The position numbers and the translations under genes are program-made. Below, in pieces: positions 1,819-25,359 of a stretch of 64,000 nt of DNA; within the stretch, counting starts at the first letter, position 1, and each line of letters opens with the position of its first letter. The notes beneath the pieces are model-generated. The model was not told the DNA's origin. It searched no databases and saw nothing but the letters and a program-made list of their open reading frames with translations. Source of the stretch: Syncephalis fuscata S228 (taxonomy: Eukaryota; Fungi; Zoopagomycota); assembly GCA_025786725.1 (NCBI GenBank), contig JAHLTZ010000038.1, forward strand, positions 1-64,000, in the 5' to 3' direction.

Positions 1819-2309
1819 GTTGCCGCATACAATAACCAGAATGCGGCTAGTGTATTGTAGAATAATACATAATAGTATGCGATAATAGACGAATGGTACA
1901 AGTAAATGTTGGATATAAGCGTACTGGATAATACATCTATGCCAATAAATATTTTAAACTTTGATTCACTCACCACTCGTTATTATGTTCAACAGAGCAA
2001 TTGTCTAGCTCAACTGCATGGATGCATCAAATTTAATCGTTTGCCTTCAAAGCACATTCAATGGCTTAATAGGTTGTTTATTATCAGTGTAATAACAATA
2101 GCAGAAACAACTAGTACTATTATTAAAGGGAAGATGTCTGTATTTATATGAACGCAATTAATAGTAGTATGTTAATAAATAAGAAATGCTACATTTATTT
2201 ATTTAAAGAAATACATAAATAATGATAGACTAGTACAAACCGGATGACTGTACAGCATATTGTGGCCCTGTTCTTGCCAAATCTAAATATCTCTCAAATT
2301 TATATCTAT
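1819..2309 (+). repeat. Right arm of the long inverted repeat; member of a dispersed repeat family
   Basis: Reverse complement of 1-492 with only scattered substitutions. Confidence 0.95.
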
Positions 2310-4079
2310 TGAAGAGGGTCAGTAAACGAGATGAGCCACATGTGCCAATGATGTTTGCTGCTTGACTACACCGCAATAAGTAGTGGTTGTCCAAACAACA
2401 TTTGCTCTGCACCATCAGATATCAGATATCTTCAAGCGCAAACCTTATGTCGCCTCAACAGCCAGATACTCAGCAAGGCAACCTCGCAAACAAACACACG
2501 GTAAGCGTACCAATGTTACTATACAAAAGACCAATCAACTATGTGCAGACAAGCGCCTTCTACAGCATGCTGGAGTACACACTGCGTGATATATAGCTTC
2601 TAGAACACTGCATATCCAGTGCTTCATAGCCAAAAGGCACAACTGCATCGCACCTCCCACGCCCGTTTACCGACCTTAGTACATATAGCAGCAACCAGCA
2701 GTGATCTTGTAATCATTAGACGTCTAGCAAGTGCAAAGCATATTGGACAACAAATGGCAGTAAGAGCGAATGAGTGTAGCGTATATCGAGTGGTAAAGAG
2801 TAGAAAGAGAAGATAAAGGTGCAATGTTGGTTCGGAGGAGCAGTAAAGCCAGCTTATGTATTGTGATAGTTGTGGAAAATGTCGCAATAAAACATGAGCC
2901 GTCTAAAACCGTCTATGACCAATGTACTACGTAATTACTCTTAGTCTTCCGTATAAGCAGCTACAACCATTCCAGTAGAATCTTCAGTACATGTAACTAT
3001 TAGTGTAATATGTAGTAAACCGTGTGTTTTCTTGTACACTTATTGCAAAAGAGTCTTTATTGCTGTCATTATATTGTCTGAACATTAATATTGGTAAGCT
3101 CTTTACAACGCGATAAGCTGATGGATTAAATCTAGATTACACGGCTTAACCGACTAAGCGTAAAAATGATCTATGCTAAACTTTACATGTAGCATAGCAA
3201 GTAAATCTGTCTATTTGGCAATATCAGTTATGGCTTTATTTCAAACAATGCCGATCATTTAGGCGGCACGCAAAGCAGCTAAATGGGACCAGTTTCAAGC
3301 TTGTAGCTACAGTAAATACCAATGGCTTATATGTTGAATACTAATGCAATCCATCTAATAAAATCTTTAAAGCAAATTGTTTTTGGCCAAGTTTATTATT
3401 GCTTTTAACTGTGTCGAATAGAGTAGCCAGCACTGTCTACGCCACATGGTAAATATACGTACACTTTGTCCTTATGCTCAAGTAGCTATAGCGCAATACA
3501 TGATTACCCTGCAATAAGCTATACGACACTTTTAAAGCACGTATACATAACACCCATAGCAAATATCTATTTTGTAATAACAAGCTTTATTTGTGTAATA
3601 GCTTATACCAGTTCATCGCTGGCCCGTTTGATACCATTGCAACATATCAGCACTGGAAAACAGCAAAAAGAGCACTAGCAGTGTAAGAAGGCTATTCTAC
3701 TTGCGCGTTTGTGTGCAAAGAGTAAAAGAAGTGCTCAGAGCTAAACTTTGCAACAAACAGCTAACAAGAAACGTATAGCTTCTGCAAATAAAGCATAGCC
3801 ATTAAGCATACAATAATATGGAGCAAATAAAATACCAAAAGTAATTGTGTGAGTAGCAGCATTAAAGCTATAGTGCGCCTTGGAAAGGAATGACTAAGCG
3901 GAACGAGTCAAACTTGTCAATATTAAGCTGGCGTCAAGCTGACAGTAGTTATTGGTAGCGCATAGTAACTGTACGGTAAAATAGCATAACAGCTATCAGC
4001 TATGCTAGTTAAAAGACAACTAGCTTTGTTAAAGCTATCGAGCATATATGCATGAGCAGATAAGCAACTTGCGTGAACT

Positions 4080-4948
4080 TTTCTAATAGTGGTGCTAGAA
4101 CCAAACAGACAACGGTAATAGCTAGCGCGTATTTACTAGATAATAAAACGAATATACAAATTAAAAAGTATGGACAGCAGTGGTATAGCTACTGGCATAT
4201 ATGCATGATCAATGAGCGACATTAGTCGACAGTTGTTAATAATAACGCTAGAACAAAATAAAACCAGTTTTGGATTGAGCATAGATGGGCGAGTGTAAAA
4301 TGACATATAAAACGATGTCAAACTATAGCGCATATAACGCAAGGAGGAATGAGTAGAGTGTGCTGGTGTACTTAATGAACAGAATGTGTCCAGTATGTCG
4401 TAGAATGATACATAGAAGTGCGGAATAAAAGGGAGTGGTGTAGGTAGATAGAGATATATGCATACTGGATAATAAATCTATAATAACAAGTGTTTTAAAC
4501 TTTGATGTCGCTCACCACCCAGCTCCATTTCAATAGGTTGAATGTTTAGTTCAAACGCGTAAATAATCAAAATAGCCATTTAACCACCAAATCACACCAA
4601 ATGTGATGATTTGATCGTTAATAAAACTCACCACCCGTCCCCATGTTCAATAGAACAAATGTGCGGCCAGTTGCGCGAATATCAAAAGTAGCCGTTTGAC
4701 ACAAATCACATTAAATGGTTAATAATTGTAATAAACAGTTATTAATAATAAAAATAATATAATAAAGCTATAACGCACTGAGTGGACTGAGTGAAGCTGA
4801 TTGAAATGCATAATGAATATAAGTGTTCAACCTGTCATTGACTAAGAGTAGGATGTAAAGATACATCTTAATGATATTGTTGGATTAAAAATATATGCAT
4901 ACTGGATAATAAATCTATGATGATGGTATTTTGGGCCCTGATGTCAGG
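4080..4948 (+). repeat. Diverged copy of the dispersed repeat family, with internal partial re-duplications
   Basis: gcatactggataataaatcta...aaactttgatgtcgctcaccaccc at 4460-4520, with partial repeats at 4620-4720 and 4898-4948, matches 1920-1980. The reverse complement of 4136-4330 matches 10570-10750 and resembles 555-660. Confidence 0.8.
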
Positions 4949-6512
4949 TACTTTAATTTTATGTTCACTAAAAGGAATGAAAAGAGAGTGGAGTCAAAAG
5001 TGGTGGAAGTGAGTCGAACGGTTCAACCGTTCAATTGTTCAACAGTAAAATGGTGGCATGGTGGCAGAACGGCGGTATTCCACCATCTCACCGTTTTGCC
5101 AGTGCACCGTCCTGCCACTACCATTCTGCCATTCCGCCATTTTGCTTTGACAGTCTCTGACTATCGACTATCAGTCTACATTTAAAGCATTTGCCGTTTT
5201 TTGGAGCTACAGGTAAGCATTGTTATGTTTTATTAAATATGTATTATTGTGCGGACAAAGACGGTGTAGCACAAATAGCCATGTACGCTTTTATAATCGG
5301 CTGTTTACTATGGTAAGATAACTGGCGCTGCTATGTAATAAATACTTGTTATTTTTACTTCAAACTACTTACCATTTAATCAACTGTTATTTTTACATAG
5401 ATATTTAGGTATGCAGTGTTAGTGTTGCTGTTTGCATTCATGCACTGTGTTTTGTTTTCAAATAATACTAGCTTTTAAAAAGATCACAAGCCTTTTCCTT
5501 GCCGTGTTATAATATGGAATAATATAGATTCAAATGAATGGTCAAATAAAGTGTAAAATAATGGCAATAAAGGTATAGTATGCGTATTGCACAAGCAATC
5601 AAGTAAAATATACAAACAATACGGCGAGTAACAAATAAACGAGTTTTATCAATAAGACATGATGAGTATAGTTTAGAATAGAATGAATGGATAAAATAAT
5701 AGTGAAGATATACATAGACGATTAAGTAAGTACATAAATTGAAACTATAGCAATAAAGCTAGCGGCAATAAAATACCTGCTGTAAATGGGTTGTGCTTAT
5801 TATATGATCGATCGATATATGACTTAATAAATACAGAATAGTAATGATATGGGTGGATAGAAGGCATATGCATACTAAATACTAAATCTATAATGACGAG
5901 TATTTTAATGGCTAATGCCATCCACCACACAGTTTCATGCTCAATAGATTGGATGTTGTTAAATTTAGCCATTTATCTTTCAAATCATACTAGATCATCA
6001 GCAAATTGTTTAATATTATTATACTAGCCTTAACACAATTAAAAAATCAAACGAACCACTATTGCTATTATTAAAATGACCAGTGTGGGTGTAGCTTTAT
6101 AGAATGTAACTAATTTTAGTATGCTATCAGTATAGTACAATTCAAATAATTGAATGGCATAACAAAGCTACTAGATATTATACTAATGTTGATTTTATTA
6201 TTTATTTATTTAAGGTATGCTAAATGGTAAAAATGGCCATAAGAAAGTAGCTGTATTTGCTACTACCTACAATCAAGATAGCTATTGGCTTCGTTGTTGT
6301 AGATATTACATTATGAACGTCATACTAATAGTTGACATCCATACATATGCACATTCAATAATGCATAAAAACAACAGCAATAACAATATCTATTGCAGAA
6401 TTTTCGATAATATTCAACTTACATGGAATGCAATCAATGTCAATACACGCCAGCAAGATGTACCTATTAAATGCAATGCTAGTAGGTATATGGTTAAGCA
6501 ATATATAGCGAT

Positions 6513-6802
6513 ATACAGCCGTTGATGTTATGTTATTGCACACGTAATAAAGTGATTAATACTATTGCTATAATTACAAAATATTAGTACCGTTGCTGTT
6601 GATTGTGCTCAAAATACGTGTCAATAACCATTATACATAGAATAATATTAACATTGCAATGCATGGTCGTATGCCACTAATGGTTGTTGACACGTATTTT
6701 TATTACAATGAATAGCAACAACAATGCTAGTATTTTATAGTTATATTAGTAGTATTAATTGATAATATTGCATGTACACTAATATATACTTCAACATCTG
6801 TA
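6513..6802. repeat. Imperfect ~290-bp inverted repeat (hairpin, MITE-like)
   Basis: aaaatacgtgtcaataaccatta (6611-6633) pairs with taatggttgttgacacgtatttt (6678-6700); degenerate pairing continues out to ~6513/6802. Confidence 0.75.
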
Positions 6803-6829
6803 GATTACTTAACTACGTTCTTTGATAAT

Positions 6830-7940
6830 ACAGCATATAACATGGCAACTTATTAGTGCATATTAGTATTATTCGTCAGTAATGCCAGCTAGCTGCTGCC
6901 GGCAACTTCACAAGCATGCTAAGCAGCAGTCGCTGTACCTTATTTGTTACTAGCCAATACCAGTGGTGCTATTTTGTATCAAACATAGTTGGCACAAATC
7001 TGTAGTATGTCCAACAAAGCTAACTACATATACCGTCGCCGGTACTGTTAGTGCTAGCTATTTATTAATAAACTGCTGTTTAAACATTAAGCAATTACAG
7101 TAGTGTATATGTTTATTTGAGTGTATAGCAATAGCTGTAATAATAAGCTGGTATGCAGCATTTTATTATTGCTAACAGTATTAAAATAGTATTATATTAA
7201 TTAAAAAACCAATCAGCATACTAGACAGCAAGCTATACTTTAGATGGCATGTTGTTAGCCGTATGGTATATACAATAACTGATGTATATACTGTTTTATC
7301 GGTATATCATACCATAAACACCGTAATATTGTGTTGATTTCCATCGTGATACCATGTTTATTTTGACTATAGGCATTAGCAAATACGGTCAATTTCTTAT
7401 AACTATTTCAACATTTAGCATTGTATAAACAAGTTGTTCACGTTATTGAAAAATTAATAAAACTAGAATGCTGGTAGTTGTAGAATATCATTTATTTACC
7501 TAAATTGTATTGTATTACTAAAACATAATCTTTTATATTTGATATAACACACCAGCGTTATATATGTAGTTGATAATAACGCTAGTTTATTTGGAATGTT
7601 ATTTGTATTAAATTTATTAAATTATTACTAAGCAACTTATCAAAATCTAATGCAATTAAGCTTAAATAATCACATTTAATATCATTCGTGTAGTTGACCC
7701 ACATATTCGGTATATTGAACATGAAACTGGGCGGTGAGTGACATCAGCCATTAAACGTTCATTATCATAGATTTATTATCCAGTACACATATATCCTTTA
7801 TCCAAATATATCATTTCTACTGTGTACTTTATTACTATATTCAATTTTATAACATACTAAACGTATTTTATTTATTATAGTTTGCAATGCATTTTACTCA
7901 TTCCGCTCATTGCGTGACATGCACTATAGCTTCAAACTGC
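6830..7940 (+). repeat. Degenerate ~1-kb segment duplicated at ~14030-14760
   Basis: Colinear blocks: cagtaatgccagctagctgctgccggcaac ~ cagtaatgtcagctggttgctaccaacaac; gtgttgatttcc...ataggcattagcaaatacggtc ~ gtgttgattcc...ataggtatcaaaaatacggcc; attgaacatgaaactgggcggt ~ attgagcataaaactagatggt. Confidence 0.7.
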
Positions 7941-8922
7941 CGATTTTGTAAGTATCGCTGTATATTAAATATACTACATATTGTTCTAGCATATAAAAAT
8001 GCATATTATCTATAAATTGTTGTCAGTCTGGCCCTGGATTTATGGATAGTATATCGCAACTCACATGTTTATAGAATGTTAATAGTATGTGTTGCTAGAG
8101 AATATATGCATATTGGATAGTAGATCTATGATACTGAGTATTTTGATGAATAGTGTCACTTGCCATTCAGTTTCAAGTTTAATAAAACGAAAATCTAATT
8201 TAATTACACAAATAGTATTGAATGTTATTATTTAATACCAATTTGCGCTAAATAATATTTGTAATTAGAATAGATAAATGAGTATAAAAGCAAGAATATA
8301 TGTAGCTTATTATTGTTTAGAGTTCTTATTTTATAATAAATACTATTATTATATAGTTTAATCACTGTTTATATAATTGGGTATATGCAGTAAATAACAA
8401 TTACTTACTGGTTATGTTTGCGAAACAGTTGATTGTTGACAATTTTCAGTATTAGTGTTTAGCATATTGCTATTATAGCTATTCATATGTTGCCATTAAT
8501 ACGATGTTCAATCATATGGCAAATGATCACATGGATATAATAGTATAATATCGTGATATTAATAACACTTAATCTTAAAATGCAGTGCGCTATTGCGGCC
8601 ACGAAAAAGACACAATATAATGAATAATTGTAAAGCAGAAAAATATTAAAAATAAATTAATGTTTTATTATTTTGTGATTATGTATTCTTTTATATTAGA
8701 CTACTATTAGTAAGAATAACTAAAGTTATTTAAACAAAATGAACAATGGAAAGAAAAATAAAATGAAAATTACTGATAGCTATATGATGATAAGGCAATT
8801 TAATTGGTATATAAATGCAAAGCACATTACCAAAAAAGGGAACAATAATGATATGAAAAAGGTGATTTAAAACAGTATTACTAGACCTTTACCATTTTAC
8901 AATTTATTCATTTATTGTTTTT

Positions 8923-9793
8923 ATGCTTTTTATTATGTTAAATAACGCTAGTATTACACTTTACAGCGTTGATGTGCCTCATTTAGCGCGTGCCGATAAT
9001 CTAGGAACAATGTTATCAGATGCTAATATTCCATTTAAAGAACAAAACATAAGGCTTGAAGACTGGAGTGCAACTCGAGAGTTGCTACAAACGACAGCAA
9101 TTGGCCATGCTAACAACAACTTATCGGCAAGTGAAGTGCGAAATCCTTACGGCGGTGCACCTACACTTGAAATCGACGGCCAATGGTACGCACAAACAGT
9201 ACCTATTATGCGCTTATTGGCGCGTGAACTTGGTGAGTTTTATCGATAAAGAAAACCAAAACAATTATTCATTTATTTATCTATTTATTCAAGGCAAGTA
9301 CGATGGTAACGATAGTTTGAAAAATACATGGTTGATGTCGTTGCAGATTTAGCCATTGATTGGCGCGCCGATCGAGTCAAGAAAAATTTGAGCAAGGATG
9401 TAAGAGGCTTGCTGTTAAGCAAGCATAAATGTAAACAGATGCTAAGTAATTATATGCATAGGAAAAACTGATTCAACGATACAACAAAAGAGATCGTCTT
9501 GTTTCATTGCTGCCATTCAAGACTACTTGCAACGTCGCGATGGTACTTACCTTCTCGGTGAAAGAGTAAGTCGCTATATACTGTATTGCTGTGTTATTAA
9601 CCATAATATTAGATAAGCTATGCGATATTTGCTTTATAGTCTAGTCTATGATGAGACACCAGAGGCGTGCAAGCTTGACGAAGCCTCACCACTTTACAAA
9701 CTCTATAAAGCAGTTGGAGAAAGACCCCGCGTTGCAACCTATGTTAATAACTGGGAGCTCAATAGACTTGAAACATGGAGTAATAAACTGTGA
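8923..9793 (+). pseudogene. Glutathione S-transferase, 4 exons, several apparent frameshifts (pseudogene or assembly errors)
   Basis: N-domain ARADNLGTML..NPYGGAPTLEIDGQWYAQTVPIMRLLARELG; C-domain pieces EKYMVDVVADLAIDWR, YLQRRDGTYLLGER-ISYA and LYKAVGERPRVATYV, separated by GT-AG introns. Frame breaks near 9315, ~9500 and ~9620-9640. Confidence 0.8.
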
Positions 9794-10564
9794 ATAAACA
9801 ATGGCGTTTTAAATTTCATTATTAAGTGATTGTTTCCCTAATATGTGTTTAAAATTTTTTTATTTATTAATATATTTTATTTAACTAATAAAACACTTGT
9901 AATTTTTTTCTTAATATTTGTGTTAGCAACAGTATTCTATTTACTAGCACATTTAATTTAGAAAACACTTTTAATCCATGTATATTTTCTTGGCTTTAAT
10001 ATGATTTTATTCAATAAAACAAATTACACGGAATAGTCGCTTAGTATGAAGTGTAGTCATTACTAACATAACTTTATATATCTTTAAGTAGCAAGAAGGT
10101 CGTACTAATAGAGCTTATTACAGATTTGCGGTATTTTATACATAGCTAACGTAGAGATAAGTGATATCTGCCAGTGGAACTCTGTGTTGCATCGAGCCAC
10201 ACATCTTTTCCTTTGATACTTTCGACTTAGATTGGGATGAGGATCGTAGTTTTATTTGTTGTCGTTATCGTACCCTTCATTTTTACAAAATAACTGCGTA
10301 TCTGGCGATTTAGGACGGCAATGATTGTTAATTGCGATGCTGGTGGTAGGTGATGCACAATATAGCCGCATCGGAGCAGAGAACACCTGTCGTAGTGTGA
10401 TCATCACCAGTCTTGGAATCAGTGTTGGCCGTTTAGTTGGCGGCGGTGGACTGTTTTCATCGTTTTCGTTTTCATTATCTTGGGCTCGTTTACGTTTCTC
10501 TGGTGTCTTTGTCGCCGACGTTTCTTGAATAAAAGGTGGTGTAATAGATTGTTTGCCAATTATA

Positions 10565-10835
10565 ATTTTGACATTATTTTATATGTCATTTTATACTCGC
10601 CCATCCATGCTCTATCCAAAACTGTTTTTATTTTTGTTCTAGCGTTATTTTTATAAATGTCGCCTAATGTCGCTCATTCACTTATGCATATATGCTTAGT
10701 AACTATACTACTACTATTCATACTCTTTACTTCGTATATTCGTTTCATTATATATTGTTATATCGTTTAATATCTATGTGCTATTCAAAACTGCTGTTTA
10801 TTTGGCGCTAGGCCTATTGGTTGTAAAGTTTAGCT
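10565..10835 (-). repeat. Copy of the dispersed repeat family
   Basis: ttttatatgtcattttatactcgcccatccatgctctatccaaaactg... closely matches the reverse complement of 4136-4330. Confidence 0.85.
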
Positions 10836-13169
10836 CATTCCTTTTGTATCTCTCACTGGTCCATATACACTGTTCCATTTACTTTCCTGTCTATACACTT
10901 TAGCGTGTCTACTCGTCTTATTGCGTAGTGCTTTATTTTTAATAAATGTGTGCTGTTTATTAAAGTGGTTCACTTGTTAATCACTTTATTTATGACGTAA
11001 TATGTCAATAGCGCTTAAATCAACGACTACTTTTATACAATACACGGCATGCTCAATTCAATTTGTATACTAGCACTGAAAAGATTGAATTTGATCCAAC
11101 GCTATTAAATACAGCTGATTGGCGTAAAAGCTTTGTTTCAATAATGCCATTGATGTTGGTTTAAATACGTGGCGACAGCACCATTGAAAAGCCGTATTGC
11201 TTCTGAGAAAAATGAAGCCATAATATTAATGGACTTGCACTGCTTATTGGCAATCTACAACTGGAAATTGGTAGTGTTGATAAGTTGTTGTTAATTCATA
11301 AGTAAACAGAACAAAGTAATATGTTGCGTTGAATTAAGCATATTTAAAAGAAGGCAACAAGATTGGCACAGCTTCTTAATATTAAAGCCAATCTGATGGT
11401 GAATTGATTAAATAGTGCGATAAACGAGTCGACAGTGAAATTAGCCCATACCTTGGCAATAATCAAAACATGTATGAGTATATTTAGCATATAGATATGA
11501 TAGTGATACTTTGACATAGATCATTCGATTAATGTATTGCAGACTATAGAGCATTACAAAAAGACTATTGTGCATGTACATAGCAACTGTTTTGGTACAG
11601 ATCGATATTGAGCTAATACAGCTATTTAAAGTTTCCAACGATGTTATGACAAAGTTAATAGTTTTGACGCTGGAATAGTGCCAATGAACGTTATTACAGA
11701 GCGCTATATAATGAATATGTATCGATTATAACATATAAACAGCTACATTACTAACACGGATAATTGTATAATATATATATATAAGCATTAATAAACAATC
11801 AAGCAGCCGTCAATGGTCAGTAGTGAACATGAAAACATTAAATTACTGTTGCCATCAACGTATAGCCAGCTGTATTAGTTAGCTGGCAATGGCAACATTG
11901 TAATATTGCTCATGATTACTATAGAAATTAGCATTATTCTATTGACAAGATCGTATTGTTAATATCTATCTAAATAGTAGAAATTAATAGCAAGCGCTAT
12001 TAGCAAATGGACAACTAAGCACCATGCATATTTTAATATATATATATATAGCTGGCCAAACGCTATTAATCAATGTTGTTTACCGACTAGCTGGTTGCAT
12101 AGTATTTACGGATACCTGCTGATTAGCTGTATCAACTGATTAACAATAGCCAATATAATAGTATAGCAATATTCTGTTAAGCAATATGCTAGTAATCGCG
12201 CGTCAACACCGATAAAATATGAATATTTGATTATTTCCATAGCCGACTATAGGTTAATAGACATGTAACATGGGTATCAGTTAATCATATGGCTACATTA
12301 GTGCTATCTGTTATTGTGTATTGCTGGTTACTGGTCGACAGTTAGTGTTGAATATACTGCGTGCATCATTGGCATGATATAGCTACCGATACTAACAGTT
12401 AGTGAGCGCTATTTATACAGCTTACTACCATTGTAAACCAATGCTATGTATTGCAGTGCAACAACTAGGAATTGGCAAAATAGTTGCTATTTGTATTGCC
12501 ACGACAGTAGTGAGCTGTGTTTAATAAATGCCACAATTGAAGTTATTGTTGAAGATTACCGATTGTCAATATAAACATGTATACTAATGCTGGCTATTGA
12601 GAATTGTCATGCCAGTTGTTACTGGGTAATTGGCGACACAAGTAGTAAACCTAGTGTTGGTACTTGCCAATTTGAAACATATCTACAAATAACATGGACA
12701 GTTAACGTCTGCTCGTTTAGCAAGTGGCAGCATAATATGCACTGTTACTAACTGATGACTATGCATAAGATTTGCTTTTGTATACCGGCAACAGTATGGA
12801 GTGCGCACCAATGACAATACTATACCAATGGCTGTTATTGTTATACACTCCACTACATAATTGTATACGGTATGTAGCCAAAATCGCCATTGTCTGTATA
12901 ACACATTTATAGCCATTAACATTGTCAGTACTATTACTGATGACTGATAGCATCTGTATAGTTGCCAGCGGCAATGCCACATAACATGATCTACCAATGA
13001 TGCAGGTTATACTTAGTACATACCACTACTAATACCAATAAAACAGTATATATATATTAGCCGATGTTGTATTAAAAATAATGATATAGTTAGCAAATTG
13101 GTATTGGTTACTAATAATCTACTATGATTACGTAAATTAGTGCTGTCTAGCTGTAATTGATTATTTACT

Positions 13170-13695
13170 AATAATAGTTAATTAATTAATACACTTTTTA
13201 ATTAGTATTGTATGTATTCATATTGTCAAAGCAGTAAAGGGGAGATTATTACAGGTTTTTTTATTAACCAAGTAATTTTTGCCAATTTTTAGTTCCATCA
13301 GTAATGTAGCTAAAAACACATAATATCATTCATTATAACTGTATAGTCTTGACGCGCCAATACATGCAAACTATGTATTTTTTTAAAAATGTGGGAAGGC
13401 GCTACAAATAAAAATAACAATATTATTATAAAAAATGGCATTTTCAAGTACTTCTTTCCAGTTAGTATCTTCCTACAATTTTTTAAAAATACATTATTTG
13501 TATGTATTGACGCGTCAAGACTATACAGTTATAATGAATGATATTATGTGTTTTTAGCTACATTACTGATGGAACTAAAAATTGGCAAAAATCACTTGGT
13601 TAATCGAAAAAATAGTAATAGTCCTTTGTGATTTTAATAATGCAAATATGCACAAATACTAAGCAAAAAGTGTATTGATTAGTTAATTAAAACTA
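13170..13695. repeat. ~525-bp foldback palindrome (MITE/foldback-like)
   Basis: 13263-13356 (attaaccaagtaatttttgccaatttttagttccatcagtaatgtagctaaaaacacataatatcattcattataactgtatagtcttgacgcg) is an almost exact reverse complement of 13508-13603; the outer arms pair more loosely. Confidence 0.92.
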
Positions 13696-15232
13696 GCCAA
13701 CATTGATTCATGTAGCAATGGCTAACCACTATTCGTTAATATACCTATATCATCATCTATTATTAGTATTATTTATGTGTTCATGTTGTTTGACTAGCAT
13801 AATTAATGGTATGAATGGTCTATTAATATTAGTAGCGTATAAATGAAATTAGAATATTGCAACCATTAATATATAATAGATATTAACGTGTATTTTGATC
13901 ACAATCGACCGCAGAGGCACTTCTATCTATTGTGCGCTCATAGTAATATTATTAACCGTTATTGTTATGTGTTTAATAACATATACAACGACAGCTGTAT
14001 ATTGTTCGATTATATTGCTTGCTAATACAACAGCCAATATATGCAACTTGATAGCGCGTATTGATATTAGTCATCAGTAATGTCAGCTGGTTGCTACCAA
14101 CAACGCTGCAAGACTACTAAACAGCAGCTGCTATACTTGTATTTGTTACTGGCAAATGCCTGTGTTGTTACTGCTGTGTATCATTAAATACATACATGTA
14201 TGTATGTCAACTGTTTAATATAAAATTTATATTATAGTGTTGATTCCAATTGTGGTATTATGCCTATTTTAATTATAGGTATCAAAAATACGGCCATTTT
14301 CATATAGATCTTTTAAAAATTAGCGTACGCTTAAATAAATGGCTTTATATTATATTATATTACTAATATATTACAATTAGTTACATTTGATACTACAGCT
14401 GTGTTATTTATAAAACAATAATATAAATACTTGATTTGATTATCTTATTTGTGTTAAGTTTAATGCATTAATATTAAATAACTTATTGGAAGTTTAGTGT
14501 GATTTAAGTTTTAAATAATTGTATTTGATGGCACTCGCGCAATATAACTACAAATTCTTTCTATTGAGCATAAAACTAGATGGTAAATTACATTAAGCAT
14601 CAAAATATTTATTATCGTATTATTATAAATAGTAATAGTACATAGTGATAACGCCTTATTTAAAATTGTTTTGTCGTTTAATGCTGGCTCTACTCATTAT
14701 AATTTTTATTTATTTCACATATTTTTTCATGCATATATATATACGCTATAGCGTTAATATCATTATTCATGCACTTTATTTTATTAGTGTTATAAAAACA
14801 ATCAAGTATAGACAGTATAAAGCATTATGAGTGAGTAAATGGGAATGTATAGATATCAGCACTAAAGTTATAGTATGCATGACAACATGATAAACTTGAG
14901 TTAAAAATCACAATTTGTAGAGCTAGCATCAAACAAACAGCAGATTTAAATAAAACAAGGTTAAAAGTATATAATAATATACAGCGTATACTTGACACGT
15001 TTTAAAAGCCATTACAATACATTTTAATGTTACAATACAAATATAATTAACCTAAAATCATCCATTCAATATAAATATAAAACAAAACAAATTCTATTAA
15101 GTTGAGCGTGCAGTTTATATTGAACATTTTTTTTGACAGAGATCATATTAAACTAGAATGATGCTAATATCTTAATTCTTTGTTTAAAATTAATACTTTA
15201 TTTTTACCAATTAAATTAAAATTAAATAGACA

Positions 15233-17323
15233 ATATTATAATAATATGACGATTGTGCTGATTACAATATAGAACAATGCATTATTATTTCTAAACTACA
15301 ATCTATTTCTATGGAAGCACGTTAATTATCTGAAATAATTATTGAAGTGTAAAACAATAAATTAATATAATCCTTTTTAAGCAGATAAATTTAGTAATTA
15401 TAAGATTTAGTTTAAAATAAAATCGTTACAGTTTATTGCATTCAAGTCATGAGGTTAAGAGCGTAAGGTGTCATTAGTCATTGAGTAAGCATTTATCCAC
15501 AGTACACAGAGCTGCCGTTGGACTTACAGGCAGTACCAGGGCCACAGGCCATCCAGACAAACGATCCATGATTGCATTGACCGAATTTGCTGCCATCACA
15601 TTTAAATTGTCCAGGAGTACATGATCCACTAGCGCTGGAAATTGAAGCAACTGGAGCAGCTGAAGTAACTGAAGCAACTGGAGTAGCTGGAGTAGCTGGA
15701 ACAACTGGAGCAACTGGTGTAGCTGGGGTAGCTGGGGTGACTGGTGCGTCTGGTGCAGAGGCTTCCTCCACATCAATTTCCTCCACATCGATGTCCTCCA
15801 CGATTTTATCTTCATTGTCGCGTCTAACACGTTTTTTGCCAGGATTAATTATAACATCAGCGCACTGTTCATATTCTTCAATTTCGGTGACGCGATGGGA
15901 GGCGTGCCACATCCAGCGAATGATTTTGCGGCCAGTAATGTCAGATGGAATGTTAATTGTCCATGGTGCCGCAGGTTTTGTCTTGGCACATCCGTCCTTT
16001 GAAGCGATCAGGCGTGGATTACTAAAATCTGGGTTAAGAATGTATACTTCGCACTTGCCAATGTGTTCAGCCGTGATTTCAAATTCAAGTTTAACTCTAC
16101 GGCCTACTGTGGTGACTGTACCAGCGGGTTCACCGCGGCAAACACCTTTAAAATTGGGGCTCTTAAGATCATCAACTAAAAACGATGCTTTTTGAATACC
16201 ACGGGGTAATGGCTTAGTCATGTAGCCGTGAGCCGATGTGCCTGAGATAGCAGAGAGCGCAATGACGGCGGCGGCGCAGAAAGTCATACCAATAGCGGAT
16301 GTAAAACGAGTCATTTTAAAAATCAAATTTGTTGTTTTAATGGGTTTAAAAGTTGCGTAGTTAAAGGACCAGCCTTGTCGTTGAAATCTAAAAGTTTGCG
16401 TAAGAGAGTGAGCGCTGTTGAGCTATTGAGTGTAGTGAAGATTTGTTTTTTATGAACTAAATGTTGCACTATTTATACTGAATTTATTAAAATGAAAACA
16501 TAAATTATTTATGGGTATTAAAGAAATGAACCGAGACCTCAAAATTGTGTGTTTCATTTTGTGAAAAACAAAGCCACACGTTACTCCATTGTTGTTGTTA
16601 CAAAGGAAATCTAGTCAACTGACTGTTTGAGTATTTTATTACATCGTCACTATATAAATTGTGCTATTTCACATATTGCTGTGTATTTTAATGTAAATAA
16701 GATTGCTTTACCAACATTCAACACATGTGGTTCAAGTGATTTGGTGTAAATGAGTAGATTGACACAAAAAGTTAATATAGGAATGCATCATTATATATGA
16801 AACAATGGTCATGCTGATTGTACTTGCAAATGCTGATGCGCCATTTTAAGGCTTTATTCACTCCCCCTTACATACAGCACAATAGACATTTAAAACGGCT
16901 TTCAACTCGTTGTCGTTGATGCCATGTTACTGGCTGTAATGCAAGCTGAAAGTTATGCAAAGCAGCAATAATAGACATGATTTTCTAAATTTATGTTTAT
17001 GCATTGTTACAACGCAATCTAATGTTATAAAAATATATTGACCATTTACAGTAATGATTGCAGTATAGAACATTCGATCATTATTGCTACATCACAGTAT
17101 ATCTATATAACGACATATGAGTTATTTATAGCTGTGGTGCCATATATATAGTCAACATGATATTACAGAATCGTTAGCTAGGTATGAATTTTATTTATAA
17201 ATACATACATAGTTGGCCACATCTAAAGTAAACAATTAACCAAATCTATAGCTACATAAGTTTGCTCTAGCAAGCCTAAAATGCTAATTTCTACTGGTTG
17301 TTTAATATTTAAGATTCTATATT
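15233..17323 (-). repeat. 2.09-kb duplicated unit carrying the solo type-B LPMO-like gene; circular permutation of 30258-32360; flanked by ATATT direct repeats
   Basis: The reverse complement of 17323-17033 matches 32071-32360, and that of 17033-15233 matches 30258-32075. ATATT occurs at 15233-15237 and 17319-17323. Confidence 0.92.
15493..16314 (-). CDS. Secreted histidine-brace (LPMO-like) protein with acidic/Pro-Ala linker and C-terminal CBM19-like chitin-binding module, type B, copy B1 (273 aa)
   Basis: Signal peptide ending ...SGTSA|HGY; mature His1; ITAEHIGKC (His56); RWMW..H...EEYEQCADV; C-terminal CTPGQFKCDGSKFGQCNHGSFVWMACGPGTACK. Single exon. Confidence 0.88.
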   Translation of the reverse strand: MTRFTSAIGMTFCAAAVIALSAISGTSAHGYMTKPLPRGIQKASFLVDDLKSPNFKGVCRGEPAGTVTTVGRRVKLEFEITAEHIGKCEVYILNPDFSNPRLIASKDGCAKTKPAAPWTINIPSDITGRKIIRWMWHASHRVTEIEEYEQCADVIINPGKKRVRRDNEDKIVEDIDVEEIDVEEASAPDAPVTPATPATPVAPVVPATPATPVASVTSAAPVASISSASGSCTPGQFKCDGSKFGQCNHGSFVWMACGPGTACKSNGSSVYCG

Positions 17324-17747
17324 GACCTAAAAATAATTATTTAATGTTTTAATTAATAAAATAATACTTTATCAAAACTAGCCAACAGCTGTTGCTAATA
17401 ATATATCAATTATTTTATATTTATATATCATTATTTTTACCTATAATAAGAGATATTTAAACAAATAAATAGCATTCTAGCGTTACTGTCTAGCACTTAA
17501 GCACACTATCATCATTGTACATGCACAGTCTTGACTATCTTTGGATAAACTTCAAAATCCGCTCAAAGTAACACGGTCGTGTAACCGAGATTGACCTGCT
17601 CGGCGATAACTTAGAAAGCTAAAAGGCGCCCATCCAACTTCCGATTCCCGCGCTATCTTTACTTGCTTTACCTTCCCATTTGCTAGTATATTTTACATAT
17701 CCATTGTTTAGTGTGTACCTTGTCATTTAAACGACTTTCTGGCCAAT

Positions 17748-19172
17748 ATGTCTGCCTTGCTAAATATCCTGGCCCCGCTGATTGTGCCGGGGCAAACCAC
17801 GCACAAGCTGCCTATGAATGAGCTACTTAATGCACCATTGGAGGAATTTCTTGAAAATACCATGCGTAGTGCTCCTGGCATCTTCGATGCGGATGGACAA
17901 GACCGCCGCCGCCTACTAGAAGCATTTGACGATTTGTCAGATAGACGCGAAAAGGCCGCCGTATTTCAAAAAATCTTTCATTATGCGGCACAAACCTGTA
18001 TGGTAGATCGTGATCGATCGGTAATTCTTTGGGTACAGACACTGGTTGAGACGCTTTTTGGCTATGCTGTCACGTCCGAGGAAGCTGAGCGCGAGATTGG
18101 CAACGATATCGATGCGGGTAGCGATGATGATGGTCAGCAGTCGCGTGGACTAAGCTTTGCCGCAGCTACAAAACAGTATACGCCTAAACGTACGGGTGGC
18201 GGTAATAACCAGGGCAATCGTCCAGCTCAGCGTCGAGGCAATAAAGACAACGATGCTTACGTGCCCAGTGATAATGATGATGATGAAGATGACTATAACC
18301 GTTCTAACCGACGCGGCAATCGCAACAACAACAACAACAATAATAATAACCAAGGACCTACTCGTACCAATGCTGGTGGTGGTAAAGGACCACATCGTGG
18401 CGATAATAGCGATTATCAAGGCGGCAATAACAATTACGATAACCGTAATGATCGCCGTAATGACTATCAAGGTGGTGGCGGTGGCGGTAATCGTCGTCGC
18501 AAGGAAGTCTATATTTCAGATGAAGCACATGCAGTTGCACGTAAAGTCTTCAGTAGACCCAGTTCATCTGAAGGATATACTTGCTCTGCTCACTTTTTCC
18601 CTTCAGACGATGGCTATGCCGTAAGTACACCAATATAGTTAACTATATAAACTAAATTATTTATTGATAATGAACATAGGCATTCTTGGCCACCTTGGAA
18701 GCAACACAAAAGACAATGGATATTTGCATATTTACTCTAACCGATGACAAGGTCGTTGATAAAATACTAGATGCCAAATCTCGTGGTGTTCAGGTAAAGA
18801 GCACATTGTTTACTAGCCTTACACGCATCAATATAGATGCTAATTAAACTATACTACTAGATTCGTCTTATTAGTGATGACACCCAGTCAAAGTGCTTGG
18901 GTGCAGATCCATACCGTCTTCGTGATGATTATGGCATTCCTGTAGTGACTGACCATAACATAGCCCATATGCACAACAAGTTTGCCATTCTGGATAGTCG
19001 TGTTCTCATCACTGGCTCATACAACTGGACCAAGGCAGCTCATTACAACAACAACGAGAATATGATTATATTGAACCACGCACCCACCATTAAAGATTAC
19101 GAACAAGAATTTGAACGCTTATGGCGTCAATTCAACGATGAAGAACGCCGTGGCATACGCGCCTCTGAGTAA
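17748..19172 (+). CDS. Phospholipase D-family nuclease (PLD6/Zucchini/Nuc-like, single HKD) with long Gly/Asn/Arg-rich disordered region; exons 17748-18620, 18680-18793, 18861-19172
   Basis: HMHNKFAILD...ITGSYNWTKAAHYNNNEN (HxK-x4-D-x6-GSxN), MDICIFTLTDD and RGVQIRLISDD; the GT-AG introns keep the frame. Confidence 0.92.
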
Positions 19173-19277
19173 TCTTTAGTAACTGAATCCACTTTAATAA
19201 ATTAAATGGTTTTTTACTAATACACCACATTTTATTTGTACTCTTTATTGATTATCAAGTAAACACTTTATACTAAC

Positions 19278-21082
19278 ATGGGACGCAATCGTAATTACAA
19301 TCCCGTAGAGGCACATCGTAAGACACACTACAATACAGTTATTTGTAGCATGTATAGTAACTAATGCCATTATTAGGCAAGGCGCAGCACAAACGGGAGA
19401 TAAAAAAGGTCAGTTTAATGCTTGTAATAGATTCTGCCTTGTATTTACAAGCTATAGCCTACAGAACAAAGAGGAGCGACGAAAGCAGCGGGAATCAAAG
19501 CTAGAGACAGCTAATCTAACTGAATTGAAGGAGCAAGTTGCGCATTATAGCGCATTAGGTAAGTAGTGCTTACACTGATCCTCGTGCTTTAACCATCGAT
19601 CTATTATTAATGGGCTAGTACAGAGTCGAATGATCGTTTGGACGCTGCATCTCGTAAAAAGTTGGAGCAATCCAAGTCCCGATTACAGAAAGCAACCAAG
19701 ATTCAACAGGTACTAACTAATTTATTGATTCTATATTATATTATATTATATTATATTATATTATATTATATTAATGGTTTATATGGTAGGAAATACGACA
19801 GAATCGCCCTCGGTAAGTCATGATTGTTTTAATAATATATATGGCTGTTAAACAATAGGATGTTGTTATTAGTCAGCCAGGTAGTACTGCTTCCTCTACA
19901 GCTGATCCTACTATACCAAAGGATCCTACACGGTCAATCTACTATCACCCAACACTGAATCCATTTGGTGTGCCACCACCAGGACAGCCTTATAGAGAGA
20001 TTGGCAAGTCACTAGTTATACAGTGTTGCATATTAATGATAGATACTACTATAGATGATATAGAACCGACACCGAGTGAACAGAGTGTAGAAAATGATTC
20101 TAATGGCGAGTCCGGCTCTGATAATTCAGGTAATTAAATAATAATAATAAGCGTATTTTTACTTAAACTATTGTACATTAGATGATAGCGGCAGTGAATC
20201 AGATGCTGATGATATGCCAGAATTGCCACCAGACTCACCGCCCTCTAATGCTGGTTCTGATCAAGAACAATTAAGCGATAATGAAGATGATTTACCGGAT
20301 CTGCCTGAAGGCACGCCACCTCCATTACCTTCAGAATTAGAAAACACTACCACCGCAACAGCAACAGCTCCGTTTAGACCGCCATTTAATCCCAACTATC
20401 CACCACCATTTGTGGGTAAGTTAACAAAACTAATATTAATATAGACACTATAGATTGTAAATAGGAGGACCTGTACCTTACCCGACATATCATCCACCAC
20501 CTATGATGAATTATGGTAGATACATTTAGTTAAAGGGAAACTACGTACAGTTAACATTTGATAATAGGAGGACATCCGCCACCACATCTAATGAATCGTT
20601 ATCCAAAACCTCCACCGCCTCGTGTACATGGTGCACGAACCGGACCGGCTTTTATGGATCCATTGAATCCAGAAGAGCCATACCAGTTGTTTCCACAACA
20701 GCAACAGCAACAGCAACCACCTGTTGCCACAGCACAAGCAACTATATCGGCTCAGCCTCAATTACGTGATTTACAAAAAGAATTAACTACTCTGGTACCA
20801 ACAGCTGTGCGTCGTAAATTGGATACAGCTACAGATAGTAATCGTTATAGTCATGATACCCGTAATCAAGACGGTACATCGATGGCGAAACGTATACGTG
20901 TTAATACAGCTCCTGGTTTGCAGACTCCAGACACCGTATCTTTATCGACAAGCGCAGCAAAGCCAGCTTCTCAACCGCCACCGCCACCAACGTCACAGGC
21001 ATCAACCAGTAATAAGGCAGCGCCTAAAAAACTACAGGATGAATATAGTAACTTTATGAAAGAGATGGAAGGATTAATGTAA
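19278..21082 (+). CDS. WBP11: WW domain-binding protein 11-like splicing factor, multi-exon
   Basis: MGRNRNYNPVEAHRKAQHKREIKKNKEERRK N-terminus, RSIYYHPTLNPFGVPPPG, Pro-rich middle, ATISAQPQLRDLQKELTTLVPTAVRRK, C-terminal DEYSNFMKEMEGLM. Confidence 0.85.
19733..19772 (+). repeat. (ATATT)n microsatellite in a WBP11 intron
   Basis: attatattatattatattatattatattatattatatta. Confidence 0.9.
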
Positions 21083-22587
21083 TCTGAAAAGATAATAAAT
21101 AGATTTGTAGTATTTATGTGTAGTCAAGTAATAATGATAAATATAGTTTAATTAATAAGTTACTGTGATGTTAATAATTGCGTAGTGTAATGCTGAATAC
21201 TATGTTTATAGACAAGCGCTTATAAAAGTACTTGTAATTTATTAATCATAAAAGTTAAAAAGTTAATCACAACAAATGCAATAAGTTTTTAATTTAAAAC
21301 TGCTTATTTACATAATTTGATTAATTGTAGCAATATTAACAGCAATGCCAATCACGTTTTATTTGTTAAAGACTTTTAACAATATGTTTGTAATAAATGC
21401 AACTCAAAAATACAATACAAAAATATATGTAAAAATTAGCACTAATAATGTTGAAATAGTAGTCAGTGTTGGAACAAACGTTGTTATTGAAAACAAAAAC
21501 CAATTACTAATGAAACAGCTATTAAAATAAAATATGTTATTAAAGAGTATTTAAGCTGCGATAAACATCATTACAAGAAAACAAAATGTGCTGTAAACAA
21601 AAATGATTTAAGTTAATAAATGAAATTTCTAATTAAAATTGAAAAACGGGATATTTTCAAAATTTTCTTTGTTCTATATAAATGCTCTTTATTCAACTAT
21701 AATAGCGCGTGTCAGCTCATTGTTAGTATGAAATCCGTTATTAAACATGATATTCATTGGCAAGTTTGCAAAGATAATAAGCCAACTAAAAAATATATAT
21801 TATTTTGAAAATACTGGCCTGTGTTTAAAGACCGCGTGTAAAAATCAGCCAAATTTAGATATCAGAAACACGAAATACAGTATATTGTTACATGTTGTTA
21901 AAACAACCATTTGAAAACTTTGCGTGAGCATGATTCTAGAAACAAAATAAATCCGGTCAAGTTTAGGATTTATTCGGCAATATACGCTATGATTTAACTG
22001 GCAGTTATTTTATGGGGTATATCCATATGATACGTGTGACAATGTTACAAAAGCAGCAATATTTACATTTACTATATTGTTATTGAAGTATTCCTTTCTA
22101 GATGTCACCGTGGTTGCACCATAGGCTGACGTATGCTGAAAGGGGATAATTGTGAGTTCACTTTCACATGGTTCAACTATTTTAGTTTGTATCAGCAACA
22201 ACAGGGGACACAGCGTAAAAAAAGAAAAGCTTTTCGAGTCATAGTTTCCAGCTAACTATTTATTATAGATAATAGAATAGAATCAAATAATATTTTGTCG
22301 AGTGAACAATTGACGTTAAATTGTATATACAGAAATGCTTATATGGAAATAAATTAATAGCTAATTATGGAATAACATATACCATTTATTATTTATAGTA
22401 ATTTCTTTGTATAAAATTAAAAATACCGGTTTTATTACTTTTTTGAAACAATAGGCAGCTGATACAATAACCTGCACTTTCCATATCTTTCAGTTGCACA
22501 CACGCATATATATAGCGCTGTTTCGTTTACTAGAAAATATAAAATATCATCAACTTTATTTTCGATACAAATTACATCAACTTTATC

Positions 22588-24654
22588 ATGCATACAAACC
22601 TTCAGCTTTTATCTTTGGTTCTTGCTGCTATAGCCGGATGTAATCTTCGTGGATCGGTAGTTACAGCTCGGCTACAGCAGCAACCCGCCCTGCTGATAAA
22701 AGCCAATCAGGAATTCATGCTACAAAATAATCTTATTACTTCAAATCAGATTAAAAACAATACTGCTACGACTCCTGCTGCAACATCCAAATCCAAAAAG
22801 CCAATACCATCTAAACCATTATTCATTCCAAGTATTGTACCGGGTCCACAATCCAAATATGAAACGCTATCTACGTCGCCTATGCTACAACAGCGTGCCG
22901 CCACCTCTAATTTTGTCAACAATCCAGAATCAACTGCACTAAGTTTTGCCATGACGCAACTCAAAATGAAGAAGAACGAATATATAATTAAAGATTCATA
23001 TATGTCATCTAGCACTGGTATTACACATGTTCGTTTCAAGCAAATTGTCCAAGGAATTGAAGTCAGTAATGCCATTATTTCTGTTCATGTGAATTCACAA
23101 GGAAAAGTCATCGCTTATGAGGACAACTTTAACAAAAGTGCCAATCCGTCTAAAAATCAGCTATGGAATGGCCAAACTTCTGTTCGGTTTACACGTCCAC
23201 GAAATGCATTTGCTACATTGGCCAAACATGTAGGAAAATTAGTTTCTGAAGAAACTATTATTGAGAGTGTTGCGGTAGATGAAAATGGAAAAACTCAATA
23301 TATATTAAAAGAAATACCGGATGTAATGGAGAATGTTGTTGCTAAAAGAAGTTACATTCAAGGTGAATCGGGCAATCTTGAGGCTTGTTGGGAGTTTTTG
23401 GTAAACTACGGCGGCAATTATTTTAATGCCCATGTTTCAGCCGATGGTCAGAACGTGCTGGCGATTTCGGATTGGATTTCATACGCATCGTATAATGTAT
23501 TCAAACTTGGCGACACTGATCCGTCCAAGGACAAGCGAGTAATGATAAATAATCCCGAAAATAAAATAGCTTCACCTGAAGGATGGCATCGATTCGATGG
23601 TCAAGCTACAACAACAACACAAGGAAATAATGCCGATGCGCAATGGGCAGGCGATGACTACGATGATTATAACAGACCAGAGGCAAAAAATCTAGTATTC
23701 GACTATCCACTGGATTTAAACAAGGGCCCAGCCGCCAACAAAGAAGCTGCCGTTACAAATATGTTTTATGCCATCAATAGTATGCACGATATTGCTTTCC
23801 GTTATGGTTTCAATGAAGAAGCTGGTAATTTTCAAAATAAAAACTTTAATAAGGCAGGTAAGGGCAAGGCCAAAGACGCTGTATATGCCGTTGCACAAGA
23901 TGCATTGGGTTCCAACGGCGCTATGTTTATGAGCAAGCCAGATGGACAGGCACCTTACATGTCTGTGTGGACATGGCAAACCACCAGTCCGGGCCGTGAC
24001 GGCGCTTTAGTAAATGATCTTGTTGTGCATGAATATACACATGGTATATCAGATCGACTTATTGGTGGTGCTTCGACACCCAACTGTCTAAGTACTCAGG
24101 AGGCGAAAGGTCTTTCGGAAGGCTGGAGCGACTTTTTTGCTGCTTGGATGCAAATGAAGGCATCAGACAATCACGACAAGATTACAGCAATTGCATCGTA
24201 TTTGGGTGCAAATGATCGTCCTTATTCGTATTCTATACACAAAGAACGCAATCCATTAACATTTGGTATGGCAAATCTAGCAGATCCTATGAAACGTTAT
24301 GTAGTAGGAACTATTTGGGGTACTATGCTATACCAAATATACTGGGTATTTGTCGACGCACTCAAATTTACAGATAAAAGGGAAACTCCAGATGCAACCA
24401 AAGGAAATACTCGTGTATTCCAGCTAATCATCGACAGCTTAGCTGTGACACCATGTAATCCAACGTTTATTCAAGCACGAGATGCAATTCTTCAATCTGA
24501 AAAAAATAATAATTCTAAAGATTCATTTTATTGTAAACTATGGGCTGTGTTCGCCTTCCGTGGCCTAGGTCACAGTGCTGGCTATGATAGCAATGGAAAA
24601 CCGATAGAAAAGTTTGATGTGCATCCAAGCTGTACCAGTAAAGCGACTGCATAA
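22588..24654 (+). CDS. Fungalysin (peptidase M36) secreted metalloprotease, preproenzyme, intronless
   Basis: Signal peptide; FTP propeptide (TGITHVRFKQIVQGIEVSNA); YGFNEEAGNFQ; zinc motif HEYTHGISDRLIGG; GLSEGWSD; PCNPTFIQARDAI. Confidence 0.97.
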   Translation: MHTNLQLLSLVLAAIAGCNLRGSVVTARLQQQPALLIKANQEFMLQNNLITSNQIKNNTATTPAATSKSKKPIPSKPLFIPSIVPGPQSKYETLSTSPMLQQRAATSNFVNNPESTALSFAMTQLKMKKNEYIIKDSYMSSSTGITHVRFKQIVQGIEVSNAIISVHVNSQGKVIAYEDNFNKSANPSKNQLWNGQTSVRFTRPRNAFATLAKHVGKLVSEETIIESVAVDENGKTQYILKEIPDVMENVVAKRSYIQGESGNLEACWEFLVNYGGNYFNAHVSADGQNVLAISDWISYASYNVFKLGDTDPSKDKRVMINNPENKIASPEGWHRFDGQATTTTQGNNADAQWAGDDYDDYNRPEAKNLVFDYPLDLNKGPAANKEAAVTNMFYAINSMHDIAFRYGFNEEAGNFQNKNFNKAGKGKAKDAVYAVAQDALGSNGAMFMSKPDGQAPYMSVWTWQTTSPGRDGALVNDLVVHEYTHGISDRLIGGASTPNCLSTQEAKGLSEGWSDFFAAWMQMKASDNHDKITAIASYLGANDRPYSYSIHKERNPLTFGMANLADPMKRYVVGTIWGTMLYQIYWVFVDALKFTDKRETPDATKGNTRVFQLIIDSLAVTPCNPTFIQARDAILQSEKNNNSKDSFYCKLWAVFAFRGLGHSAGYDSNGKPIEKFDVHPSCTSKATA

Positions 24655-25359
24655 AACTAGCTTAATAAACAATGAATAGATATGTCAATTAGTCGCAGTA
24701 GAAGTGTTGGTGTAACAATGTCAAGTAATATTCTATGTATATTATAATCTATTTAATTTTACAAATAGCCATGTAATAATGGTAATTCATATTGTAATAT
24801 ATATGCTATTTTTAAATTAATCTATTGTTTGCTACGCGTCAATTAACAGAAATGCAAACGAATAGGTAAAAATACCTAATAACAGAGTGCTAGAATGATA
24901 AAAGCACAGCCAAGCAAATATAGTTTGATGAATTGTACATGTAGCAGATGACCTGTTTATTTTCCACATAAAGGCCGGTTAAATTGTGGCCGAATCCAAA
25001 ATTCAAGGCCCAGTGAGGAGATTTGACCAAGTTTGTGCACATACACGCGACACGATTCTACTAAAAATATAAAAAGCATAGGCGAGATCGTTACCGGAAT
25101 GACACTATAATGATACTTCTTGTGTAATATTATTACCATAATTCTTGGCTAAATATTTTTAGAATTAATAAAAAATTCTTGGCAAACTACAATACGTAGT
25201 CAACTCTACATTTTAAATAATATAAATATGTAGCTGCTAATTTGCTAATTTAGAAATAATTATCAACATCATCACCACTACCAATAACAACAACAACACT
25301 CTTTGGCGCTTTCAAGCCTTTCCAGTAAACTCTATTACGTCCCGGTCTTTGACAGCATT

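Follow-up and report, generated by a model that had tools for sequence, protein, structure and literature searches.

Tandem gene families are subject to concerted evolution, an analogous background for the locus described here. Among the closest described systems are microhomology or non-homologous tandem duplications followed by NAHR and gene conversion, as in the yeast CUP1 arrays, in which single-gene tandems of 1.2–2 kb have junctions with little or no homology (PMC4232551). The locus in Syncephalis fuscata has in common with these systems a single gene, a head-to-tail unit of ~2 kb and a short-homology joint, as well as later exchange between repeats that gives mosaic, locally homogenised paralogues (PMC4232551); yet the exchange here would be between inverted loci 13–15 kb apart, and a whole diverged paralogue (gene B) moved into an array of gene A.

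Duplications mediated by circular DNA, such as human cSDPs (PMC7450558) and eccDNA-mediated duplications (PMC7188851, where cattle and wine-yeast cases are cited), share with the locus a permuted order and donor ends joined inside the derived copy at microhomology. In those cases the circle has a unique opening point and its insertion involves no homology, as at the human insertion sites described by Chicote and colleagues (PMC7450558), whereas the S. fuscata insert is bounded by a perfect repeat of 432 bp. Tandem duplication on the donor side was treated by Takahashi and Innan as a typical false positive for circle signatures and this class was removed from their eccDNA survey, although a circle is not strictly excluded by it (PMC7188851); a donor-side tandem, which may be secondary, exists for the S. 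fuscata insert. The XylA eccDNA of evolved yeast (PMC4352087) likewise has a circle joint at short microhomology and reintegrated as a tandem array, but that circle had a replication origin, could be isolated as a molecule and went back to the locus it came from, whereas a circle in S. fuscata is hypothetical.

The window, which is the whole stretch of DNA analysed, covers bases 1–64,000 of contig JAHLTZ010000038.1, and all structures are known from assembled contigs of one S. fuscata assembly (GCA_025786725.1), to which a second contig, JAHLTZ010000176.1 (contig 176), also belongs. The repeated gene in the window is intronless and its product is secreted. A profile search of the product gave a match to Pfam LPMO_10 above cut-off (E 1.9e-9), and His1, His56, His112 and Tyr120 are invariant among 10 relatives compared; judging from this match and these histidine-brace residues, the gene encodes a lytic polysaccharide monooxygenase (LPMO). 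Fungal LPMOs with a chitin-binding-type tail also have the N-terminal His after the signal peptide and the invariant second His and Tyr, but the tail here is only CBM19-like, the CBM19 match of an A copy being below cut-off. PDB 7P3U, which we take to be an AA11 enzyme, was a weak sequence match (E 0.007). A single unit with one B gene (the solo unit) has the following features:

15233–17323, minus strand: solo unit, X-S-promoterB-geneB-downB, 2,091 bp, with AATAT at either end
15090–15232, minus strand: flank F2 past the 3′ AATAT, with weak collinear similarity to the upstream region of a DBP9-type helicase
15233–15237, minus strand: AATAT microhomology at the 3′ end of the solo unit, reading ATATT on the plus strand
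15493–16314, minus strand: solo gene B, 273 aa, with signal peptide, LPMO domain (invariant His1/His/Tyr), Pro/Ala linker and CBM19-like Cys-rich tail
16601–17032, minus strand: solo copy of S, differing at ~11 sites from S2, S3 and both S copies of contig 176, which are all the same
17033–17323, minus strand: X of the solo unit; no array-native homologue is detectable for its initial ~170 bp, and its end carries a homologue of the R repeat
17319–17323, minus strand: AATAT microhomology at the 5′ end of the solo unit, reading ATATT on the plus strand

The remaining copies form an array on the plus strand, upstream of a DEAD-box helicase gene:

27730–28457, plus strand: gene A0, 97.5% identical to A1, its frame broken near 28179 by a one-base deletion
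28631–29062, plus strand: S1, with alleles at 28942, 28949 and 29031 that are absent from S2, S3 and both contig 176 copies; 29031 matches solo
29356–30084, plus strand: gene A1, 242 aa, identical to A2 in DNA
30259–30690, plus strand: S2, left duplicate of the 432-bp entry homology
30977–31816, plus strand: gene B of the array, 279 aa, with 1 substitution against contig 176 B and 11 against solo B
31817–32075, plus strand: downB of the array, its last 65 bp with 6 substitutions against both flank-anchored copies
32071–32075, plus strand: junction AATAT between downB and X, head-to-tail, present too in contig 176 at 8983–8987
32071–32361, plus strand: X of the array, the same sequence as the second X of contig 176
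32362–32793, plus strand: S3, right duplicate of the 432-bp homology
33089–33817, plus strand: gene A2, 242 aa
34020–34215, plus strand: region before the DEAD-box helicase gene plus its initial codons (ATG at 34184), homologous to the end of X and 5′ S

The solo unit, read from 17323 to 15233, aligned end to end with array positions 32071–32365 followed by 30259–32075, with 33 substitutions in 2,089 columns (1.6%) and a few indels, one of them an 18-bp indel in the linker repeat. The solo unit is thus a circular permutation of an array unit, as the original prediction had correctly stated, namely of the 2,103-bp array insert, and AATAT was confirmed at both solo ends and once at the head-to-tail junction of the array (32071–32075). 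Solo-array identity ends at both 5-mers. An overlap of at least 5 bp at a random junction of this composition has a chance of ~0.024. A permuted derived copy with the donor ends joined inside, closed at a junction of so little homology, is what a circle would leave. A reading of AATAT as a transposon target-site duplication was rejected, as the 5-mer is the overlap at the joint and belongs to the junction itself; none of the ORFs tested matched a transposase family, which agrees with the earlier remark that no transposase is visible, and no matching terminal inverted ends were seen on the solo unit, so that no marks of cut-and-paste transposition were seen. In-register recombination between the ~80-bp R repeats, which are 76% identical and lie near both ends of the unit, was rejected as the source of the junction because the joint is displaced from that register by ~290 bp. 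The 10-bp repeat found at 17034 and 17318 does not exceed chance expectation (~3 such pairs expected per 450 bp by hand estimate).

S2 (30259–30690) and S3 (32362–32793) are perfectly identical over 432 bp, and once the 2,103 bp from one S start to the next are deleted, what is left is a regular A-S-A tandem; its two units differ by 4 substitutions in ~1.63 kb. Given the identical S copies and the regularity of the array after removal of the insert, B is a young insert in the array, brought in by homology at S, with S duplicated in the process.

An older history is recorded in S itself. The end of X together with the 5′ part of S (32305–32495 in the array and 17085–16900 in the solo unit) is a diverged copy of 34020–34215. 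Compared with the helicase upstream region and its first ~9 codons, this segment scored 79 against a shuffled maximum of 42, and it is joined to LPMO upstream sequence; S is therefore an old tandem-duplication joint born at the array. Most copies of the LPMO family now have this remnant of the helicase promoter upstream. For solo B, the simplest origin would be that a single array unit was long ago copied linearly, in inverted orientation.

Contig 176, of 19.2 kb, also encodes the A protein. It is collinear with the window from 24174 to 10771, with flank substitutions of 0.51% and 0.67%, and from this collinearity, the low divergence and the small size it is probably the other haplotype of the isolate; three of four Zoopagomycota tested were non-haploid (PMC6784888). 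A paralogous segment or a mis-join are the alternatives, and either would weaken the explanation preferred below. At the solo position contig 176 carries two units, in the order flank-AATAT-X-S-promoterB-B-downB-AATAT-X-S-promoterA-A, followed by ~55 bp of A-type 3′ sequence and then by solo-type downB-AATAT-flank. This head-to-tail tandem (6878–10989) has a period of 2,105 bp and a microhomology joint. Array positions 30262–33870 align with contig 176 in unbroken linear order; the 3,609 columns contain 3 substitutions (0.08%, against 1.6% between solo unit and array) and 2 single-base indels. This 3.6-kb tract is thus closer than the allelic flanks (0.5–0.7%); its switch points lie in S and in the shared block past the stop codon. 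S2, S3 and both S copies of contig 176 are identical to each other, the A gene of contig 176 differs from A1 and A2 at 2 sites, with the B base at each, and its B gene differs from array B at one site. Between the first unit of contig 176 and the window's solo unit, divergence is 1.77%, three times that of the flanks. Most of this excess falls within S, with 11 sites, and within the initial 40 bp of X, the repetitive linker and the final 65 bp of downB, the latter with 6 sites, while the core from promoter to downB differs by ~0.8%, compatible with alleles.

Stitching of the array B insert, or of the contig 176 tandem, out of reads that belong to the other locus, by way of the S and S-A repeats, might in principle have produced this near-identity, the array insert and contig 176 being 99.9% identical. 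One-base indels at 30835, 31939 and 28179 resemble consensus errors, and the exact junction sequence had no match in the metagenome contigs searched; the LPMO proteins were not found in any independent assembly. However, the allele pair 31537 A plus 31543 T of array B occurs in neither contig 176 B nor solo B, contig 176 shows substitutions of its own together with both flanks of the solo locus, and the solo unit is a distinct sequence rather than a collapse of contig 176. A chimeric assembly is on these grounds improbable.

With a probability of roughly 0.55, we favour a tandem duplication that arose by microhomology at the solo locus and was later carried into the array by ectopic gene conversion. 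A slip of replication or repair between the AATAT sites, 2.1 kb apart, would have made a head-to-tail tandem; the tandem and its junction are present in contig 176, and the solo locus would be where they first arose. An A-type gene of the array would then have overwritten the second unit from S/promoter to ~55 bp beyond the stop codon, conversion being the proposed mechanism of a mosaic that is directly visible. A break in S of the A-S-A array would finally have been repaired on the solo-locus tandem: repair would have entered at the first S, copied promoterB-B-downB-X and exited at the second S, with 2,103 bp inserted between identical S copies. That product is present in the array; its direction and place in the order of events we infer. 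The single solo copy in the window would be the second allele, which was never duplicated or has since collapsed to one unit. Neither a free circle nor a transposase is needed.

The allele patterns fit this sequence of events. S2, S3 and both S copies of contig 176 are of one type, and S1 differs from them by three alleles that it has retained, a pattern expected if the donor supplied both flanking S copies; A1 equals A2 while contig 176 A departs from them at two B-type sites, which fits a tract that ended before the A2 coding sequence. A tract from the first to the second S of contig 176, ending at that point, yields the S, A and B patterns directly. The locus thus has a donor-locus tandem with a microhomology joint, and a tract bounded by long homology and closer than alleles, as tandem duplication plus conversion would leave. 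Homogenised tandem arrays of the LPMO family at other loci and in S. plumigaleata were counted in the same direction. On contig 42 of S. fuscata at least 4 homogenised LPMO copies stand in tandem, with catalytic domains 94–99% identical, and S. plumigaleata has a tandem array of 3 copies. A and B (~83% identical in the catalytic domain, B being 17% diverged from A) form one clade, separate from the other S. fuscata and S. plumigaleata copies, which are themselves grouped by locus. Duplication plus conversion is the normal mode of this family.

Several smaller features of the family were recorded. The contig 42 array (at least 4 copies) lies at 8641–20923, with an inverted fragment at 1875–2321 and mosaic identities of 77–97% between units. 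The broken frame of A0 at 28179, which a public gene model of 228 aa bridges, may reflect a pseudogene or a consensus error. A block of ~60 bp with short inverted ends in the A1 and A2 promoters (29117–29185 and 32848–32918) differs from the B and A0 promoters there, and further copies of it were absent from the sequences compared.

That a ~2.1-kb circle was involved had been the central claim of the original prediction. Its 5-bp joint, the entry through S homology with duplication of S, and probably a solo-to-array direction all stand, but the contig 176 tandem, carrying the same junction at the solo locus, takes away the need for the circle. A retained tandem from which a linear copy could explain the permutation had been named beforehand as evidence against a circle, and contig 176 is essentially such a tandem (3 substitutions), with A rather than B in its second unit. 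Because of that second unit, and because contig 176 may be a later product of array-to-solo transfer, a circle is made unnecessary rather than excluded.

In the circle version of events, unlikely in our estimate, a free circle of 2.1 kb closed at AATAT at the solo locus and entered S of the paralogous array 13 kb away by one crossover, targeted by homologous recombination; the contig 176 tandem arose later, a B-A cassette being written back into one solo allele by array-to-solo conversion, or else through a second circle. It predicts an identical array structure, since the permutation, the 5-bp joint and the S duplication are all real, and a single array-to-solo tract accounts both for the near-identity of contig 176 with the array and for its solo-type 3′ tail. 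Yeast provides a precedent in a microhomology circle that was reintegrated in tandem (PMC4352087), but that circle had a replication origin, and none is known on the 2.1-kb unit. The circle is, besides, superfluous given the contig 176 tandem, and it requires conversion of both S copies to the donor type as well as two B-type patches in contig 176 A, or else later homogenisation of A1 and A2. The 6 substitutions beside the joint would also suit a synthesis-based event better than clean excision. Circles could be released by the contig 176 tandem and by the array alike, through S-S or X-X recombination.

Starting from the tandem or from the circle takes a similar number of events. The S1 and A-coding alleles lean towards the tandem first, and the excess divergence between solo and contig 176 leans the opposite way. 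Against the tandem, one long array conversion into a single solo allele would build the contig 176 structure too, and such array-to-solo conversion would explain the 1.77% divergence of the first unit against 0.5–0.7% in the flanks; moreover, since the tandem is B-A and not B-B, an extra conversion is required. Tandem duplication first is nonetheless preferred on the strength of the observed tandem, the allele patterns and a prior by which tandem duplication at short homology is more frequent than the ectopic reintegration of a small circle that has no known origin. A tandem that preceded the array insert and served as its source is favoured but not proven.

That substitutions cluster next to the joint points to error-prone synthesis there, judging from general knowledge of microhomology-mediated BIR, and this would suit a single template switch (MMBIR/FoSTeS type) as well. 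Starting from a broken S of the array, synthesis would have entered the solo S and run through downB, jumped back by 2.1 kb at AATAT, continued through X-S and returned to the array, with neither a free circle nor a prior tandem, contig 176 being secondary. The same product is expected; the 65 bp leading up to the joint hold a cluster of substitutions, and the 76%-identical R repeats lie near both unit ends. Such a switch, however, needs a long tract and a back-switch even though homology already copied would have allowed immediate rejoining, and a second event is still required for contig 176; it is quite unlikely.

Where the junction was made bears on the direction of transfer. The first ~170 bp of X had no match among the array-native flanks. 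The ~80-bp repeat is common to the 3′ flanks of A and B, and in A2 it continues into the helicase upstream region. Flank F2, past AATAT at the solo locus, weakly resembles that upstream region (p 0.02 anchored, 0.005 local, 0.001–0.13 global and 0.02–0.06 by pair-HMM), while X past the junction does not continue the R/helicase-upstream homology (p 0.06–0.77). With the start of X lacking an array-native homologue and downB running weakly into F2, the junction was probably made from solo-locus DNA; this evidence is suggestive, and the weakness of the F2 continuity signal (pair-HMM p 0.02–0.06) counts against the preferred explanation. Origin at the solo locus fits an A-S-A background that is very young while the B within it is 17% diverged. 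X as the native array continuation of downB, plausible by eye, was not significant in 3 tests. The X end as an R1 remnant gave p 0.003 when anchored and 0.15–0.2 in local tests.

The original prediction had also offered the reverse path, in which the unit popped out of the array by S-S recombination and integrated at an empty AATAT site with 5-bp microhomology to give the solo copy. This is topologically possible, S originated at the array and B must ultimately come from the array lineage. However, the array without its insert is a regular and very young A-S-A tandem, whereas B is 17% diverged from A; the homology that X fails to continue past the junction is weakly continued by F2; and neither allele of the solo locus, in the window or in contig 176, is an empty site. 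The path is accordingly disfavoured, and we consider it very improbable.

S. plumigaleata has no LPMO at either site, its gene order is rearranged and its intergenic DNA is saturated, so that a comparison with this sister species says nothing on the direction of the events. From 17748 to 34184 the S. fuscata order is PLD, Wbp11, M36, hydrolase, LPMO array and helicase, all on the plus strand, and in S. plumigaleata it is Wbp11(−), M36(−), hydrolase(+), PLD(+) and helicase(+). The LPMO array occupies the PLD position of S. plumigaleata, and the solo copy adjoins PLD. An intronless relative of the PLD-domain protein, 47% identical, lies at 1386–6905 of a metagenome contig, beside NRPS-like genes. 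At 22588–24654 of the window a complete ORF of 688 aa encodes a fungalysin (M36) with an FTP propeptide, the public gene call being only 297 aa.

The first 15 kb of the window is gene-poor: among the ORFs tested, a GST-like gene at 8866–9793 (weak GST_N match) is the sole recognisable gene from the contig start to the solo copy. The contig begins with a 505-bp inverted repeat, 97% identical (1–505 and 1806–2309), which may be a non-autonomous element or fold-back; ORFs near it matched no transposase family. Dispersed repeat families, 67–86% identical, occur in this part at 287–511, 1803–2024, 4320–4546, 4869–4933, 5842–5957 and 7683–7932, with further pairs at 4137–4322 and 10567–10754 and at 6743–6971 and 13940–14170. 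Imperfect palindromes at 13175–13689, 6511–6805 and 43199–43248 (about 78%, 70% and 86% self-complementary) are MITE-like or AT-rich hairpins.

The permuted LPMO copy most likely reflects routine gene-family turnover. As a fresh instance of known processes, tandem duplication followed by conversion would be unsurprising to specialists. Were the circle route true, eccDNA-mediated gene movement would extend to an early-diverging fungal phylum, and, as far as a limited literature search goes, no earlier report of a gene moved by a circle exists for Zoopagomycota; this move would also have been targeted by homology. Under the preferred explanation, the locus would be a natural example of a circular-permutation signature arising from a donor-side tandem and gene conversion. 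Its intermediate would be visible on contig 176, probably the isolate's second haplotype, and such a case would urge caution in eccDNA scans based on one haploid assembly. In this mycoparasite, a secreted LPMO family varies in copy number and in A/B mosaic structure.
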